A stretch of 63,733 nt of DNA, counting the filler, from Octopus bimaculoides (lineage: Eukaryota), in the NCBI RefSeq assembly GCF_001194135.2. It is 5 parts of 4 records of this genome, joined end to end, with 100 filler letters (N's around TTAATTAATTAA, not from the genome) between each part and the next. Parts side by side here need not be neighbours in the genome. Positions count along the whole stretch, not along the records: positions 45,968 to 53,902 come from NC_068999.1; 4 more parts are not named here. One strand, given 5' to 3'. Below the pieces are notes generated by a model. The model had not been told where the DNA came from, searched no databases, and was given only the letters and a program-made list of their open reading frames with translations. The translations under genes and the position numbers were made by a program. Of the stretch, positions 45,968-53,902 are shown one piece after another; the stretch's first letter is position 1, and every line of letters begins with the position of its first letter.

Positions 45968-46051
<84 letters not shown>

Positions 46052-46521
46052 GCTGCGGAATACGTAAGACGTTCTTTTGAACATTGTTTGTAAATTATAC
46101 TTTAAACTGTGTTTCTCACTTTGTCTTTACAAGTATATGTTATCAATTTTCTTTATAAACTGACAATAAGAACATTAGGAACCTTTTGGAAGGTGCTCGG
46201 TGATTGCTTCTGGCCCGAAAGGGACAGTATTTATTCATTTAATTATCTGTTGCACTCAGAAAACACAAACACACAAGACGGCGTCGTCATCATCATCACC
46301 ATTACCATCCGCATCAGCGACCATCATGGAAGCGTTGAGGGGGGAAAGCCTTTCCTTCCACCAGCCCTCCCACATAATAAGATTCCACCTCTCCCTCATA
46401 TCACTCACTCTCAGCCTCAACAACAACAGCCGAAGCAATGTGAGATCTCGCGAAGCATATGAAATCAGTAGCAGCAACAGCGGGAATGCGAAGACGGAAA
46501 AGCGAGCAAGAGAGAGAGAGA

Positions 46522-46575
<54 letters not shown>

Positions 46576-46899
46576 AGTAGAAATAATAAGAGCAACACCA
46601 CTACGGCGACCACTACTGACACCTGCAAAACAGAAATCATCAAAACAACCTCAAACTTTAAAAAAATGTGAAGAACACCGACCAAAATAATTCCACGAAT
46701 TTAAAAAAAATATCGACGTAACCAACTTTAAAAAAGAAATTTCTCTGCTGGCCCTTGATGAATAAGCAAAAGAATTGGTCCAAGCCCCACAAAAAAAATC
46801 ATAAAGATTGAGTAGGTTAGCGAGTTAGTCCATCGGAAGTTGACGGGCGCAATCAACATCCGTTGGAGGTTAGCCCTGAAAATGGCTATTAGAGTAGAG

Positions 46900-47870
46900 G
46901 CAGTAGTAAGGAAATAGCCTTAGAGTAATATAGGATTGAGGGAGAGCTAATTAGGAAGCTAGAGGAGACGCTTAGGAGGGGCATCGTGACTGACGTGCTG
47001 GCGGCGAGATTGGCTCTTGATCAATTCTTCAATGCCAAACACAAAGGTTGCGTTGTCAAAGCTAGGGTACGTGCTCTAAGACATGAAGGGACGAAAGCTG
47101 TTCGATGGGCCCGGATGACAGAGGTGCAACGTGGCAACAAAGCCACAATTCGGGACAAGCGTATGCTACACGATTCCAAGCAGATGGTACGGAATTCCAA
47201 GCAGATGGTTCGGAGTGTGTGATGTGTCGGTGATGGAAGTGAACTTCATCTCCTAGCTCGATGACATGCTGCGCCTTTCGGCCAGGGAAGCGGAGTTCTG
47301 CGAAATACCGATAACAACCTAAGACATATGGGACGCAACAACGAGCTGAACAAAGGAGTAGTCTCTGGGGCTGGATAGTCCGCCCTTCGAGCTTTATTTT
47401 GATATGCTAGACCTGTTCGGTGATCTCTCGGCGTGTGTCCACCACAAATGGCAATAGAACCGAAGAATAGCCAATGCTGTGAGCCGTGGTGCGGTGGTGC
47501 TGCTGACAAAGGATCCGAACGAGGGGGACAAATGAGATAATTTTAGCACCATAACTCTGCTAAATGCAGATTATAAGATTTTGGCCAAGTTATTAACCAA
47601 AAGGTTAGTGCTTGCCGTCGATAAGCTGATCGATAACGCGCAGACATGTGCGAACAGATCTATCCATGACAACCTCCACCTCACGCCGAAACCAGTGTGG
47701 AAACAGTATGCTGGAACCGCTGCTAGAAGGTAGTAGGCCTTCGTTCCCATACTCGCAACATATCGGATGCAACTGGGCATCACTAACGAGCTACAGGACA
47801 TGTCCTCTTGGGGTTAAAAACATCGCAGTAAAGTCCGTTCGAACGGGACAGACATGTTGAAGTGGCTACG
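46900..47870 (+). mobile_element. L1/Tx1-type LINE ORF2 fragment with a large internal deletion
   Basis: HKGCVVKARVRA...EG; GAVVLLTKDPNEGDK*DNFSTITLLNADYKILAKLLTKRL...LIDNAQTC..RSIHDNLHL, then a jump to post-RT PVWKQ-like sequence. Confidence 0.82.
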
Positions 47871-48150
47871 CACATTACTCACTTGTACAACTACTGCTAT
47901 CATCTCACAGACAGATTTTGAAATAAGCTTTTTTGCTTGTCTTGTGTGTGCGCGCGTGTGTGTGTGTGTGTATCTGTATGTGTGTCTGTGTGTGTCTGCG
48001 ACTTTGTGTGTGAATTAAAAACGATTAATTATATAAAAATATATGAATAATTTCGTAAAATGATATTTTACATGAATTAATTTTAATTTACGAAAACCAT
48101 TTTGTTACATATTGTGACCGTAATAAAAAACTTTTCTAAAATATAAATAT

Positions 48151-48183
<33 letters not shown>

Positions 48184-48737
48184 NNNNNNNNNNNNNNNNN
48201 NNNNNNNNNNNNNNNNNNNNNNNNNNNNNNNNNNNNNNNNNNNNNNNNNNNNNNNNNNNNNNNNNNNNNNNNNNNNNNNNNNNNNNNNNNNNNNNNNNNN
48301 NNNNNNNNNNNNNNNNNNNNNNNNNNNNNNNNNNNNNNNNNNNNNNNNNNNNNNNNNNNNNNNNNNNNNNNNNNNNNNNNNNNNNNNNNNNNNNNNNNNN
48401 NNNNNNNNNNNNNNNNNNNNNNNNNNNNNNNNNNNNNNNNNNNNNNNNNNNNNNNNNNNNNNNNNNNNNNNNNNNNNNNNNNNNNNNNNNNNNNNNNNNN
48501 NNNNNNNNNNNNNNNNNNNNNNNNNNNAAACACAGGATTCTCTGATTTCGTATCATGTACTACAAATCTGTGTGAGAATGTGCGTGTATATGTGCGTGTA
48601 TGTGCGTGTGAGTGTGCGTGTGTGCGTATGTGTATGTGTGTGCATGTGTGTAAATATATACAATAATGATATGATTGACCGTTGACTGAACACTATTCAA
48701 TTTTTTTTCTCCGTGTTTTTCTCCTTGTCTCCGTATC

Positions 48738-48772
48738 CTTTCTGTTGAAGAGCGTAGCTCGAAACGTCAAAG
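48738..48772 (+). ncRNA. Minimal type I hammerhead ribozyme-like motif (Penelope-type) with a variant core
   Basis: CTTT-CTGTTGA-A-GAGC(GTA)GCTC-GAAA-CGTC-AAAG: stem I CTTT/AAAG, stem II hairpin, palindromic ACGT in place of stem III, GTC cleavage triplet. Core A6 is T. Confidence 0.65.
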
Positions 48773-48906
48773 ACTTTCCGTATTCCCGAGCGTCATACTA
48801 ATATATCCTTTTGTTATTTACACCACCTGTCCTCGTCTGTTGTTATTATTTGTATATTCTCCCATATATATGTATATATATATATATATATATGTCTCTG
48901 TTATAG

Positions 48907-49033
48907 AGTGCCCGGACGGTGTAGCGAATGGTTCATATTTTCTTCTGGAGGGAATGTGTGCCGCATGCTGGTGTCAGGCGCCCGCAGCTTCGGCCGGAAT
49001 GACAGCTCCCCAACCAATGGCATCATGTGTCTC
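48907..49033 (+). CDS. Internal coding exon of a single-VWC-domain (SVWC-like) peptide gene, phase 1 to phase 2
   Basis: Acceptor TCTCTGTTATAG, donor TC|GTAAGT. Encodes (E)CPDGVANGSYFLLEGMCAACWCQAPAASAGMTAPQPMASCV(S) with the CxxCxC VWC motif; GC-rich against its flanks. Confidence 0.85.
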
Positions 49034-50188
49034 GTAAGTAACATTGAAACTCTACACAAGCAACAAGCTATCGTAAGTACGCACGCACTCTATCCTTTAC
49101 ATACAACGAAGGAGCGTCCATAACAGTCATAGACAAACTGAGGCCCGCGGGACATTCTAAATGGAACACCATGGCAAGCAAGAATAACCTTGAATTCTCT
49201 ACATGTTCGGCTTGCCTGATGATGGGCCATGTGTCAGGCGGCCCGATTCTCTAAAAGTATGTCTATGCCTGATCTAGAAGGTCAAATGATCTGCTAGACA
49301 TACCAGCCAAATCTCCTGAAATGCAACCTTAAAATCACATCATAGTGAAAAAAAAAAGGTATTGACGTATTGCATAATGTAGTCTTAAATATAAAAATAG
49401 ACAGGATGGTCTCGACTGGAACGCTTTTGCCCGTAGGTTTTCTTCATCAAATATTTTTGGCGAATAAACATAATCTAAAGCAACAATCACACACACACAA
49501 ACACGTGGTAACGAGAGAGCCTATATGTGCTCGCTCTCCTATCTAGAAATAGTAAGTAAATCAACCTCATACCTATGAAAAGGATTTGTTATGTGGTTAA
49601 GTAGTTTACGTCGGTATCTCGCTGTCCAGGGGTTCAGTCCCATTGCACGGCACGGAAAGCAAATACTTTCCTTCATAATCCTGGCCTGTTCAATGCCTTG
49701 TGAAAGTATGTAGGAGATGGATACTGTGAAAGTATGTAGGAGATGGATACTGAGCTTATGTGAGTGATTAAGTATATATCTTTCTTTCGGGGAGGGGATG
49801 TATGAGCGGGGTGGTCTTCATGATTAATTAGTCCTATGTACACGTCTGAAAAAGACACGGCCAGAGCTTGTCTCATTTTGATCAGAAGTCTCTCGTTCAC
49901 ATATATGTCTGAGAGAGGTTTAGATAACGACGACAAAAGCAACACCAACATTATCAACAATAACAACATAAACACCGACAACACTACCACCACCACCAAC
50001 AACAACAACAACAACTACAGCAACTACACCAGTAACAACAATAGCAACAACTACTAATGAAGCCGCAGCTATGGCAATATGCTTCGCAGACAACTAAATT
50101 TCATGTTCCGTAATTATGTCATATTTCTAATACAGCAAAATCTTCGTTTCTTTCATTTCGTTATTCTTGTCTTGTTTCTTTATCGTAG

Positions 50189-50285
50189 ATGTGCTGTAGT
50201 CAATATGGGCTGTGGCGAAACGGAGCTAGTCAACCCCAACGCAACTTACCCAGCTTGTTGTGAGGAAAGGTGTAAAAACAACTAA
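50189..50285 (+). CDS. Terminal coding exon of the single-VWC-domain peptide gene
   Basis: Polypyrimidine acceptor TTCTTGTCTTGTTTCTTTATCGTAG; phase-compatible with the previous exon (TC|A = Ser). Encodes CAVVNMGCGETELVNPNATYPACCEERCKNN*, with the YPxCCxxxC SVWC-type end. Confidence 0.87.
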
Positions 50286-50357
50286 ACACAAAACGGAATT
50301 CTTCATCTCATTGAGAAGAAACTAAAGTTACACTAGCTTCGTACAACACTGATCGCA

Positions 50358-50363
50358 AATAAA
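50358..50363 (+). promoter_or_regulatory. Candidate polyadenylation signal AATAAA; alternatives near 50456 and 50578
   Basis: 73 nt after the stop codon of the VWC gene. Confidence 0.45.
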
Positions 50364-50372
50364 TCGTGCTTT

Positions 50373-50439
<67 letters not shown>

Positions 50440-50699
50440 TAAAGCACGATTTATAAATAAACCGAGGTATTACAGTATTAAATGAATATGAGAAAGACAG
50501 GAGATAAAGCACGATTTATTTGTGGTCAGAGTTGTTCGAAAACCGAGGTTCTACTGTATTAATGAAGTCTCTAAATGAATAAATTGGATTAATTATGATA
50601 ATGTTGTTTTTTTATATATTTACTACGGATTACTTGAAACTAACTCTCTTCCTACACCTCGATTCTTAGATCTTATAAATATATATGTTCTTCTATACT

Positions 50700-50885
50700 T
50701 TTACATGTTTCAGTCACTTGACTGCGCCTTTAGTCGACCAAATTGACACCAGGACTTATTCTTTGTTAATCTAGTAGTTATTCTATCGGTCTGTATGGCC
50801 GAACCGCTAAGTAACAGGGACCTAAACACCCCAACATCGGTATCAAGCGATGGTGGGGTGGACAAACACAGACACACAAATACAT
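50700..50885 (-). mobile_element. SINE family B 3' part
   Basis: TTTCAGTCACTTGACTGCG...CCAGGACTTATTCTTTG...GAACCGCTAAGTAAC; homologous to 55860-56110, 58870-59035 and 59765-59975. Confidence 0.8.
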
Positions 50886-51109
50886 ACATACATATATATT
50901 TGTTTTTTTTTTTCGTGGAAACCCGCAATAAGAATGGTCTTTATACACGACAAATGTGTCACAAATATATATCAAGTGATTTAAAAGTGTGTCTAATAAA
51001 ATTATGCCATCAGCAATGGAATAATTTAAGTAATATTTAACACTACCCTGTAATTAAGTTCTTATCTCCTTTGTGTGTGGATTCACCATGTACGTGAACA
51101 AGTATTTGC

Positions 51110-51302
51110 AGTTTGTGTATATATGCTTTTGCATGTTTGTATATGTGTGTGAATAAATGTGTGTGTGAGTGTATATGTATGTATATATATATGCATATAC
51201 ATAAATGCATACATGCATACATACATACATATCTACATACACACATACATATATACTTGCATACATGCATGCATACATACACGCATACATGCATACATGC
51301 AT

Positions 51303-51379
<77 letters not shown>

Positions 51380-51565
51380 CACACATACATACATGCATGC
51401 ATACATCCATACATACATACATATATACATACGCACATACATACATGCATGCATGCATACATATATGCATACATACGTACGTATATACATACACACATAC
51501 ATGCATACATACATACATACATACATACATACATACATACATACATACATACATACATACATACG
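51110..51565. repeat. Compound (TACA)n/(TA)n/(TGCA) low-complexity tract
   Basis: Direct reading. Confidence 0.95.
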
Positions 51566-51659
51566 TGCGTGCACACAACGTGACAAAAAACGCAACACAA
51601 AATGAAGCAAGGAAAAAATTACTTTGAGAGAATGAGATGGTCTGGATTACAGGGAAGTG

Positions 51660-51732
<73 letters not shown>

Positions 51733-53083
51733 CTGTTTTGTGTTCATATCATGCAAAAACGAAAATTGCGTTTCACAAGGCAGAGGTTTAATCATACAGT
51801 CAACGCACTTCTCTGTTCTTTTCTATTCCCAGGTATAAGACAATGTTTTAAAGGTAGCGCCTGGTAGAAGATCGATAACAGAATAGTATACAGATATTTA
51901 ATTATTTTGATTTTCTTATCTGACTGCTTTTCTCAGTCATTTGAACTTTAATGTGATTTTGTTAAAAGTCATTGCTTAATAAGCACACCTGTAAGACGCC
52001 TTCGTTACAGATTAACTTGTTCAAAGTGCAGCACGCGGTTGGGTTTCTGGTTCTTATAGTCATTTCTCCTTCGTTGACTGTGTCTGTGCTTTGCTAAAGA
52101 CGTCAAATGACACTGAAATATGCCTACAGTTGTCTTCCATAAAATATTCATACCTTGTCTCTGATGACGGAATACCCAGTGCACGGACATGCTAACCTAC
52201 CACTTGGGGTATCCCAGAAACGGCTGTAACACTTCAAATTCACCTTACCCTAATTAAATTATTCTAAATGATTTCAGATACTCGTTCTGCCTTGGTTTGG
52301 ATTTTTCCTCTAATATAATATAATATAATATATTAATATATGATATAATATTTTATATATATNNNNNNNNNNNNNNNNNNNNNNNNNNNNNNNNNNNNNN
52401 NNNNNNNNNNNNNNNNNNNNNNNNNNNNNNNNNNNNNNNNNNNNNNNNNNNNNNNNNNNNNNNNNNNNNNNNNNNNNNNNNNNNNNNNNNNNNNNNNNNN
52501 NNNNNNNNNNNNNNNNNNNNNNNNNNNNNNNNNNNNNNNNNNNNNNNNNNNNNNNNNNNNNNNNNNNNNNNNNNNNNNNNNNNNNNNNNNNNNNNNNNNN
52601 NNNNNNNNNNNNNNNNNNNNNNNNNNNNNNNNNNNNNNNNNNNNNNNNNNNNNNNNNNNNNNNNNNNNNNNNNNNNNNNNNNNNNNNNNNNNNNNNNNNN
52701 NNNNNNNNNNNNNNNNNNNNNNNNNNNNNNNNNNNNNNNNNNNNNNNNNNNNNNNNNNNNNNNNNNNNNNNNNNNNNNNNNNNNNNNNNNNNNNNNNNNN
52801 NNNNNNNNNNNNNNNNNNNNNNNNNNNNNNNNNNNNNNNNNNNNNNNNNNNNNNNNNNNNNNNNNNNNNNNNNNNNNNNNNNNNNNNNNNNNNNNNNNNN
52901 NNNNNNNNNNNNNNNNNNNNNNNNNNNNNNNNNNNNNNNNNNNNNNNNNNNNNNNNNNNNNNNNNNNNNNNNNNNNNNNNNNNNNNNNNNNNNNNNNNNN
53001 NNNNNNNNNNNNNNNNNNNNNNNNNNNNNNNNNNNNNNNNNNNNNNNNNNNNNNNNNNNNNNNNNNNNNNNNNNNNNNNATAC

Positions 53084-53131
<48 letters not shown>

Positions 53132-53863
53132 GTATATATGTATGTATATATGTATATATATGCATATATATATGTGTATATATGTATGTGTGTATATGTA
53201 TGTCTGTGTGTGTGCGTGTGTTGTATGTGTAGGAATATATGCATATGTGCGTACGTATATATCCCTCTACGTGGAAGAAGGAAGAGAAGATATACTGATA
53301 CAGGTGGAGGAGGAAGACATTATATCGACTACAAAAATTTAAAATTTACTCTCTCCCTCTCTCTTTTTCTCTCTCGCTCCCTCTCTTTGTCTCTTGCTCT
53401 CTGTTGCTTTTTCTCTCTCGCTCGCTCTTTCTAAATATTCTACGACCACACACCGTGTATTGTTTAACGAAGTCAGATAAAAAAAATATAAAAGACAAAC
53501 AGACGAAAAAAAAAATCAGAAAGGAAGCCAACAAGTTGATCATAAGTAAAAATCGCAGGAAATTCAATTCACCGTTTCATCTACAATTCCACTTCTTAAA
53601 CAATTTCAATTCCAATTGATGAAGAATTCGACTTGAAAACCCATTCTATAGAATAGGTCAAATTAAAAGACTTCAAAGAGGAATTTAACTAGAATTGCAA
53701 ATAATGACCAATAGAATAGAAAAGAAAAATGAATTCAAAAAGTTTTGTGAATGAAATCGAAAGGTAATCTAGAAAAAAAAAATTGATGTAAAAAAAAAAA
53801 CGAAAGAAAATGGCATTTGAAATGTTAACGCTTCAATTTAAATACTTACATTATTTTATGCAC

Positions 53864-53902
<39 letters not shown>

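Follow-up and report, generated by a model that had tools for sequence, protein, structure and literature searches.

A 63,733-nucleotide (nt) stretch of Octopus bimaculoides DNA (the window, meaning the whole stretch at its full length) carries, in its part at positions 45968-53902, the last two of three coding exons of an already annotated O. bimaculoides gene. The product is a secreted peptide with one 10-Cys VWC-type domain and nothing else, and the gene is an ordinary, real, lineage-restricted gene for a secreted Cys-rich peptide of the VWC/SVWC kind. Its gene model is already in UniProt, and locating exons 2 and 3 adds nothing new to it. The feature worth following is the way in which the exons have diverged: compared with O. 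sinensis, the coding exons, above all exon 2, have diverged faster than the adjoining intron and untranslated region (UTR). The analysed part itself is animal DNA rich in AT and in microsatellites.

The window is collinear with the LOC115222397 locus of O. sinensis (L002) from the last base of exon 2 (49033, corresponding to L002 16746) to position 50603 (L002 18905). This stretch spans intron 2, exon 3 and the 3'UTR, with blocks at 49141-49488, 49495-49569 and 50027-50328, and intron 2 aligns at 75-87% identity. In the main blocks of intron 2, 475 of 587 positions are identical (81%), as are 126 of 156 in its last ~160 nt (81%) and 35 of 43 in the 3'UTR (81%). Identity is 70% in exon 3 (64/91) and 56% in the ungapped, Cys-anchored part of exon 2 (38/68), where it amounts to 49% outside the Cys codons. 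The difference between exon 2 and the intron gives p = 1.5e-5 in Fisher's test. Estimated by the Nei-Gojobori method, the nonsynonymous divergence (dN) is 0.73 and the synonymous divergence (dS) ~1.5 in exon 2 (proportion of synonymous differences, pS, 0.65 over ~23 synonymous sites), against a dN of 0.34 and a dS of 0.48 in exon 3. Upstream of exon 2, only microsatellites are common to both species, and their order is conserved, a GT-rich tract preceding (TA)n. The pattern points to accelerated coding evolution or to an exchange of exons between paralogues. Exons that diverge faster than introns are a hallmark of conotoxin and snake venom PLA2 genes and of some immune effectors.

The identity of the gene follows from its product. 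Joined in frame, the two exons encode a 74-aa peptide identical to the one proposed in an earlier note on this DNA, and it corresponds to residues 27-100 of A0A0L8G8C6_OCTBM (P0001, 100 aa, Octopus bimaculoides) with 100% identity and 100% coverage. P0001 was its single match in a search of a 5.8-billion-protein collection. The gene had been described as hidden; it is in fact present in UniProt as A0A0L8G8C6, under the name "VWFC domain-containing protein". In the searchable literature, no paper was found that names the family accessions or diagnostic sequence strings, and publications on SVWC together with octopus or Mollusca yielded general statements only.

Both exons, their canonical splice sites and the 1155-nt intron between them were all found by direct reading, as the earlier note had laid them out (Table 1). 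The acceptor of exon 2 reads ...gttatAG followed by AGTGCCCGG, with 48907 as the first exon base, and its donor reads ...TGTCTC/GTAAGT, with 49033 as the last. At exon 3, a pyrimidine-rich tract precedes the acceptor cgtAG/ATGTGC at 50189. One correction concerns the first junction: the intron upstream of 48907 is of phase 1, and the Glu codon receives its first G from an upstream exon instead of the acceptor AG, the residue in the annotated protein remaining E. Exon 2, with the product (E)CPDG...MASCV(S), contains Cys1-Cys5 and matches residues 27-69 of P0001 with 100% identity. The product of exon 3, (S)CAVVNMGCGETELVNPNATYPACCEERCKNN, contains Cys6-Cys10 and carries the family-invariant VNP...YPxCCExxC motif. 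The ten cysteines are spaced by 15, 2, 1, 17, 2, 6, 14, 0 and 3 residues, with CxxCxC and CC-x3-C present, reproducing the spacing proposed before. The two predicted N-glycosylation sequons (NGS and NAT) are likewise present, but their positions are not conserved across the family.

Table 1. Features of the gene for the 10-Cys VWC-type peptide, in window coordinates.
Feature	Positions	Strand	Length	Details
Intron 1, 3' end	48864..48906	+		(TA)n microsatellite, short pyrimidine tract, acceptor AG
Coding exon 2 of 3	48907..49033	+	127 nt	Phase-1 intron before, phase-2 intron after
Intron 2	49034..50188	+	1155 nt	GTAAGT...TAG ends; interrupts the codon of the Ser that lies between Cys5 and Cys6
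Coding exon 3 of 3	50189..50285	+	97 nt	Includes the TAA stop at 50283-50285
Probable 3'UTR	50286..50363	+		Ends at the first AATAAA (50358-50363); first 43 nt resemble O. sinensis

The annotated full-length protein adds just a 26-residue signal-peptide exon (MTSFLLKTIVLAVLVQLAFGATFMMP) to the N-terminus of the 74-aa peptide, which bears out the proposal of a secreted single-domain peptide. The opposite case, in which the two exons are the last repeat of a large protein with further VWC repeats upstream, fails against an annotated protein of 100 aa. The signal peptide of P0001 (MTSFLLKTIVLAVLVQLAFG) is hydrophobic, with a mean Kyte-Doolittle hydropathy of 2.56 over residues 8-19, and its assignment rests on this hydropathy, not on SignalP. 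The 100-aa precursor is thus divided into a ~20-aa signal peptide and a mature peptide of ~80 aa that is acidic (pI ~4.1, 8.3 kDa). P0001 has no further Pfam domain besides a sub-threshold SVWC match.

Exon 1, encoding residues 1-26, had no credible tblastn match with the full protein anywhere in positions 45968-53902. A candidate at 48735-48755 (SFLLKSV) was rejected as a chance match (E 5.8, with no ATG and no hydrophobic run). The analysed part holds 2.9 kb upstream of exon 2, including a gap, and intron 1 of O. sinensis measures 6.5 kb. Two assembly gaps are visible as runs of N at 48184-48527 and 52364-53079. The first lies inside intron 1, 380 nt upstream of exon 2, and makes the true upstream distance uncertain. 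The predicted coding total nevertheless fits the scheme of the homologues, 79 + 127 + 97 = 303 nt, or 100 codons plus the stop. At the other end of the gene, the polyadenylation site is placed by the position of the AATAAA hexamer and is to that extent a prediction.

The family of the gene is small. When 1.84 billion representatives were searched exhaustively with phmmer (E <= 0.001), five hits came back: the query itself (P0001, 100 aa, 100% identity), three true relatives and a false positive. The relatives are P0003 from Argonauta hians (GAB1605364.1, 100 aa, 42% identity to the O. bimaculoides protein), P0004 from O. vulgaris (CAI9736640.1, 109 aa, 42% identity), whose cluster includes XP_029648486.1 of O. 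sinensis (LOC115222397), and P0005 (UniParc UPI0006955C66, 74 aa, 43% identity). Cephalopod homologues, which the earlier note had expected, are in this way found in Argonauta hians and in O. vulgaris/O. sinensis. A profile search of the 90%-identity-clustered collection gave no additional members. From these sequences, the family seems confined to octopods (Octopus, Argonauta), with one or two genes per species in these databases, and full-length intact proteins are annotated in four species. The rejected hit, P0002 (1084 aa, E 2.6e-31), is the translation of a tandem repeat, with 18 copies of a 58-aa unit (...QNPNSTLCYCCSRGW...). Its score arose purely from repeated short matches, a warning on summed scores for translations of tandem repeats.

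Across five members, the ten Cys are invariant together with V, G, VNP, YP and E, and the tail reads VNPxxxYPxCCExxC. The loop between Cys4 and Cys5 is the most length-variable of the family, ranging from 16 to 24 residues; what had been singled out as an unusually long Ala/Pro/Met linker is this loop. The signal-peptide exon shows 12/20 and 13/26 identities, and the mature region 36-42%. One further O. vulgaris protein, P0006 (CAI9736639.1, 144 aa), departs after ...YPACCEE, where 45 unrelated residues replace the last Cys-containing tail. This tail is consistent with an internal AG/GTGTGT donor in exon 3 (L002 ~18780), a site at which the window has AAAG/GTGTAA, and P0006 may represent another isoform or an artefact of annotation.

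The exon structures of the Argonauta locus (L001) and of the O. sinensis locus were reconstructed from their proteins. In both, exon 1 has a length of 79 nt and a phase-1 end. Argonauta has an exon 2 of 124 nt and O. sinensis one of 148 nt, each with a phase-2 end in the codon of the residue preceding Cys6; their third exons measure 100 and 103 nt, respectively. The three genes examined at the DNA level (window, O. sinensis and Argonauta) share the positions and phases of their introns. Since these positions and phases are shared, the frame is intact and ten Cys are found in every annotated member, a chance open reading frame is excluded and a pseudogene is very unlikely.

SVWC (PF15430) was the only Pfam match of the family, found in four of five members with E-values of 0.0014-0.082 and with all scores under the gathering threshold of 27 bits: 19.2 bits for the spliced peptide (E 0.0014), 17.3 for full P0001, 19.0 for P0003, 18.0 for P0005 and 13.6 for P0007. 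This signal is specific. None of six Cys-fixed shuffles and none of four full shuffles gave a match (E <= 10), so it does not reflect mere cysteine composition. As a positive control, the scorpion venom peptide La1 (its sequence probe database-confirmed at 100% identity) scores 37 bits. The SVWC consensus, C-(18,23)-C-(4)-C-(10,16)-C-(6,23)-C-(8,13)-xPxCC-(1,5)-C, has eight Cys (PMC11515477). When Cys3 and Cys5 are left out, the spacings of the O. bimaculoides peptide become 15/4/20/6/11+YPA/CC/3, of which four of six fit the SVWC spacers and the consensus as a whole does not. The canonical ten-Cys pattern is also present, with C2xxC3xC4 as CAACWC and the C8C9 motif as CCEERC. Judged from the alignment of the cysteines, the two extra ones, Cys3 (in CxxCxC) and Cys5, are exactly those that mark a canonical VWC. 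The automatic name "VWFC domain-containing protein" implies that another signature method matched. The SVWC-like tail of the earlier note is thus there as YPxCC, and its link to SVWC holds in that this is the sole Pfam family matched, but scores of 13.6-19.2 against 27 bits do not establish membership. Its "hybrid" architecture is accurate by Cys positions, though the peptide is not a demonstrated member of either curated family.

The layout of a signal peptide followed by a lone VWC-like domain is the same as in the SVWC proteins (Vago of Drosophila, Culex and shrimp, MdSVWC1 and La1). The mature octopus peptide, at ~80 aa, is within the 65-163 aa given for SVWC proteins (PMC11515477), and the xPxCC-x(1-5)-C motif is C-terminal in both. 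Octopus Cys1, 2, 4, 6, 7, 8, 9 and 10 have one-to-one counterparts in the eight cysteines of SVWC. The differences lie in the cysteine number, ten in octopus against eight, the extra Cys3 and Cys5 being the canonical VWC pair, and in the spacers, where Cys1-Cys2 is 15 residues in octopus and 18-23 in SVWC, and Cys4-Cys6 is 20-27 in octopus and 10-16 in SVWC. The octopus family is also seen only in octopods, whereas SVWC is mainly arthropod. SVWC proteins are described as secreted host-defence or pattern-recognition proteins, and granularin is cited as a molluscan single-VWC opsonin (PMC11515477). No gastropod protein such as granularin of Lymnaea stagnalis came up when the octopus protein was searched exhaustively with HMMER, and any relationship to granularin is consequently too distant for sequence detection.

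Canonical VWC domains (PF00093; Crossveinless-2 (CV2) VWC1, procollagen IIA, VWC2/Brorin) have ten Cys, with the C2-xx-C3-x-C4 and C8C9-xxx-C10 motifs that are also found in octopus. The octopus Cys4-Cys5 loop of 16-24 residues and Cys5-Cys6 spacer of 2 are unlike the canonical ranges, which are 6-14 and 3-4 in PROSITE PS01208. The octopus domain is also free-standing, fast-evolving and lineage-restricted, whereas the canonical VWC is a repeat in large proteins. Automatic names point to the canonical side, giving VWFC for the O. bimaculoides protein in UniProt and "von Willebrand factor C domain-containing protein 2-like" for the O. vulgaris homologue in UniRef. The canonical fold is made of subdomain 1 (SD1), a three-stranded sheet, and subdomain 2 (SD2), with the disulfides C1-C4, C2-C8, C3-C5, C6-C9 and C7-C10. 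In CV2 VWC1, SD1 extends from Cys1 to just past Cys5 and binds bone morphogenetic proteins (BMPs), SD2 comprises Cys6-Cys10 with the disulfides C6-C9 and C7-C10, and C2-C8 joins the two (PMC6270503). The octopus intron is found at the SD1/SD2 boundary as defined there (PMC6270503). Because this phase-2 intron falls between Cys5 and Cys6, exon 2 would correspond to SD1 (Cys1-Cys5) and exon 3 to the disulfide-rich scaffold SD2 (Cys6-Cys10).

The explanation that best joins these findings, and that we regard as moderately probable, is a secreted VWC-like peptide whose SD1 binds an extracellular partner, probably a pathogen or foreign surface. The peptide would be secreted and folded by five disulfides, and it would bind its partner via SD1, the ligand-binding face in chordin-family VWC domains. 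SD1, and SD2 less so, has outpaced the neighbouring intron and UTR by a wide margin in its divergence between O. bimaculoides and O. sinensis, and this partner would be the one that drives such diversification. By comparison with the known systems, the divergence pattern points to diversifying selection on SD1 as the putative binding subdomain. A pathogen or foreign surface would be the most likely partner, and a structural or developmental ligand a less likely one. Precedents exist for an opsonin, for pattern recognition and for a cytokine-like role (granularin, arthropod SVWC/Vago). Vago-type antiviral cytokines are marked by a Dicer-2-dependent induction on viral infection and by JAK/STAT activation in neighbouring cells, and granularin-type opsonins by the stimulation of phagocytosis in haemocytes. 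The likeliest role would thus be that of an extracellular binding or host-defence protein. More tentatively, and with less confidence than the binding role itself, the octopod-specific secreted family, with its 10-Cys framework, its SVWC-like tail and an SD1 exon that outpaces the flanking introns, might represent an arms-race gene.

Several observations weigh against this interpretation. The host-defence role would stand on analogy and on the evolutionary pattern, and the divergence comparison covers one species pair, O. bimaculoides and O. sinensis. The synonymous divergence of exon 2 is very high, which positive selection alone does not predict. The same mosaic could result if a divergent paralogue (e.g., P0005) had swapped its exon 2 with the gene, or if the orthology were misassigned. 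As to the domain, membership in SVWC is not established, all scores being below the Pfam gathering threshold, and P0004 of O. vulgaris has no SVWC match. In hhalign, the octopus family aligned with La1 over 11 columns, i.e., the YPxCC motif only (P = 0.011, probability 4%), with a template of low sensitivity, La1 being a single sequence. The canonical VWC family PF00093 gave no match for any member at E <= 10. Two AlphaFold2 models built on 4-5 sequences (pLDDT 57.6 and 61.5), one run taking the full precursor and the other the mature peptides, were of low confidence, and a Foldseek comparison of these models with the PDB gave no match at E < 1. The fold and the disulfide map therefore derive from the Cys spacing only. 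A Foldseek hit to the C-terminal region of MUC2, which holds VWC domains, had an E-value of 2.4 and was not used as evidence. PDB sequence searches with the peptide and with the family profile gave nothing at E <= 10.

Among the other explanations, the one that survives best is non-adaptive, and it is considered possible although clearly less probable than a binding role. Exon 2, together with sequence upstream of it, might have been swapped with a divergent paralogue, or the O. sinensis gene might be a paralogue with homogenised intron 2 and exon 3. Such an exchange would account for synonymous sites near saturation in exon 2 (pS 0.65) next to ~19% intron divergence, and for a break in similarity exactly at the boundary of exon 2 and intron 2. 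A possible donor is visible in P0005, whose exon 2 part has the Cys spacing of the window gene (15, 2, 1, 17, 2); its UniParc accession is numerically near that of P0001, no more than a hint that both came from one O. bimaculoides submission. Against an exchange, the microsatellites upstream of exon 2 keep the same order in both species, and a repeat resembling a short interspersed element (SINE) lies downstream at a collinear position, so the locus looks orthologous on both sides of exon 2. Moreover, no closer O. sinensis or O. vulgaris protein is present in the 90%-identity-clustered database.

A venom or salivary peptide, i.e., a disulfide-rich product of the posterior salivary gland like scorpion La1, shaped by a predator-prey arms race, is judged unlikely. 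Its signal-peptide exon is more conserved than the mature region, and the divergence of its exons beyond that of its introns is classic for conotoxin and snake PLA2 genes. La1 was itself confirmed as a member of Pfam SVWC that is found in venom. The likeness to La1 is, on the other hand, confined to the YPxCC motif, the searchable literature contains no octopus venom or saliva study naming the accessions or sequences of the family, and the databases hold one or two copies per species, whereas toxin families are usually expanded. Immune or extracellular recognition was put first mainly because of this low copy number and the retention of the family across octopods; its ranking above venom is weakly supported.

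The rapid divergence favours an arms-race role, be it immune recognition or venom, and argues against a conserved developmental modulator of BMP/TGF-beta signalling (Brorin/VWC2-like, or a minimal chordin/Crossveinless-like protein), in which SD1 would bind BMP ligands. This modulator is regarded as improbable. The full canonical 10-Cys pattern, including the Cys3 and Cys5 that arthropod SVWC proteins lack, would suit it, as would the VWC2-like UniRef name of the O. vulgaris homologue and the BMP binding by SD1 in CV2 (PMC6270503). A conserved ligand predicts purifying selection, however, and SD1 evolves fastest of all parts (dN 0.73 for the two Octopus species). In addition, the family is found in octopods only, PF00093 is not matched and the names in the databases were assigned automatically.

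An extracellular-matrix or biomineral-associated protein from epithelia is held equally improbable. Single- and multi-VWC "kielin/chordin-like" proteins are the most abundant matrix components of the Argonaut eggcase (bioRxiv 10.1101/2021.07.10.451900), VWC proteins are also present in bivalve shell proteomes (PMC5854119), and the family has an Argonauta hians member. It is nonetheless found in Octopus species without a shell or eggcase, the Argonauta sequence of the family was not found in one supplementary file of the eggcase paper, and a matrix role leaves the hyperdivergence unexplained. Finally, a gene-prediction artefact or a pseudogene, for which the missing exon 1 in the analysed part might speak, is given almost no credit in view of the intact frame, all ten Cys, the canonical splice sites, a three-exon structure with the same phases in Argonauta hians and O. 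sinensis, and intact proteins in four species.

Several repeats were noted in and around the gene. In intron 2, a perfect 26-nt tandem duplication (TGTGAAAGTATGTAGGAGATGGATAC x2.1) occupies 49699-49752. A 56-nt segment of the same intron (49141-49196) is single-copy in O. bimaculoides and is found as ~7 tandem copies with a period of ~61 nt in O. sinensis (L002 16900-17320), which explains part of the difference in intron 2 length (1155 vs 1951 nt). An (ATAG)17 microsatellite at 50373-50439, within 50355-50520, is flanked by the inverted repeat AAATCGTGCTTTATA ... TATAAAGCACGATTT; AAAGCACGATTTAT has a third copy at ~50507, in or just past the 3'UTR, near the first AATAAA.

The SINE-like, high-copy repeat lies at 50674-50899, just downstream of the gene. 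In O. sinensis, one collinear copy with ~76% identity sits after the end of the collinear stretch, and at least four further copies occur within the 29-kb locus (copies listed at L002 19040-19204, 8656-8906, 16138-16360, 26326-26495 and 28322-28539). The coding exons, exon 2 above all, are much more divergent between the two species than this shared repeat. The repeat has no Rfam or tRNA match, and Rfam and tRNA scans of the whole analysed part were empty. Further upstream, a GC-richer stretch (0.44-0.51) at ~46800-47860 translates, with stops and frameshifts, to ...STITLLNADYKILAKLLTKRLVLAVDKLI..., a motif that we take to resemble the N-terminal portion of a reverse transcriptase of long interspersed elements. 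It matches L001 22966-23386 at 67% and L002 11339-11532 at 75%, and this putative retrotransposon fragment has no Pfam match.

The joining of a 10-Cys VWC pattern to an SVWC tail bears on the relation of the 8-Cys arthropod SVWC to the ancestral VWC. If the fast divergence of the coding exons reflects positive selection, the gene would be promising as a component of cephalopod immune recognition or venom, two classes with few characterised examples. If the arms-race reading is true, the peptide would be part of the venom or an immune factor, either pathogen-recognising or cytokine-like, and it would be the first cephalopod candidate of the Vago/granularin type.

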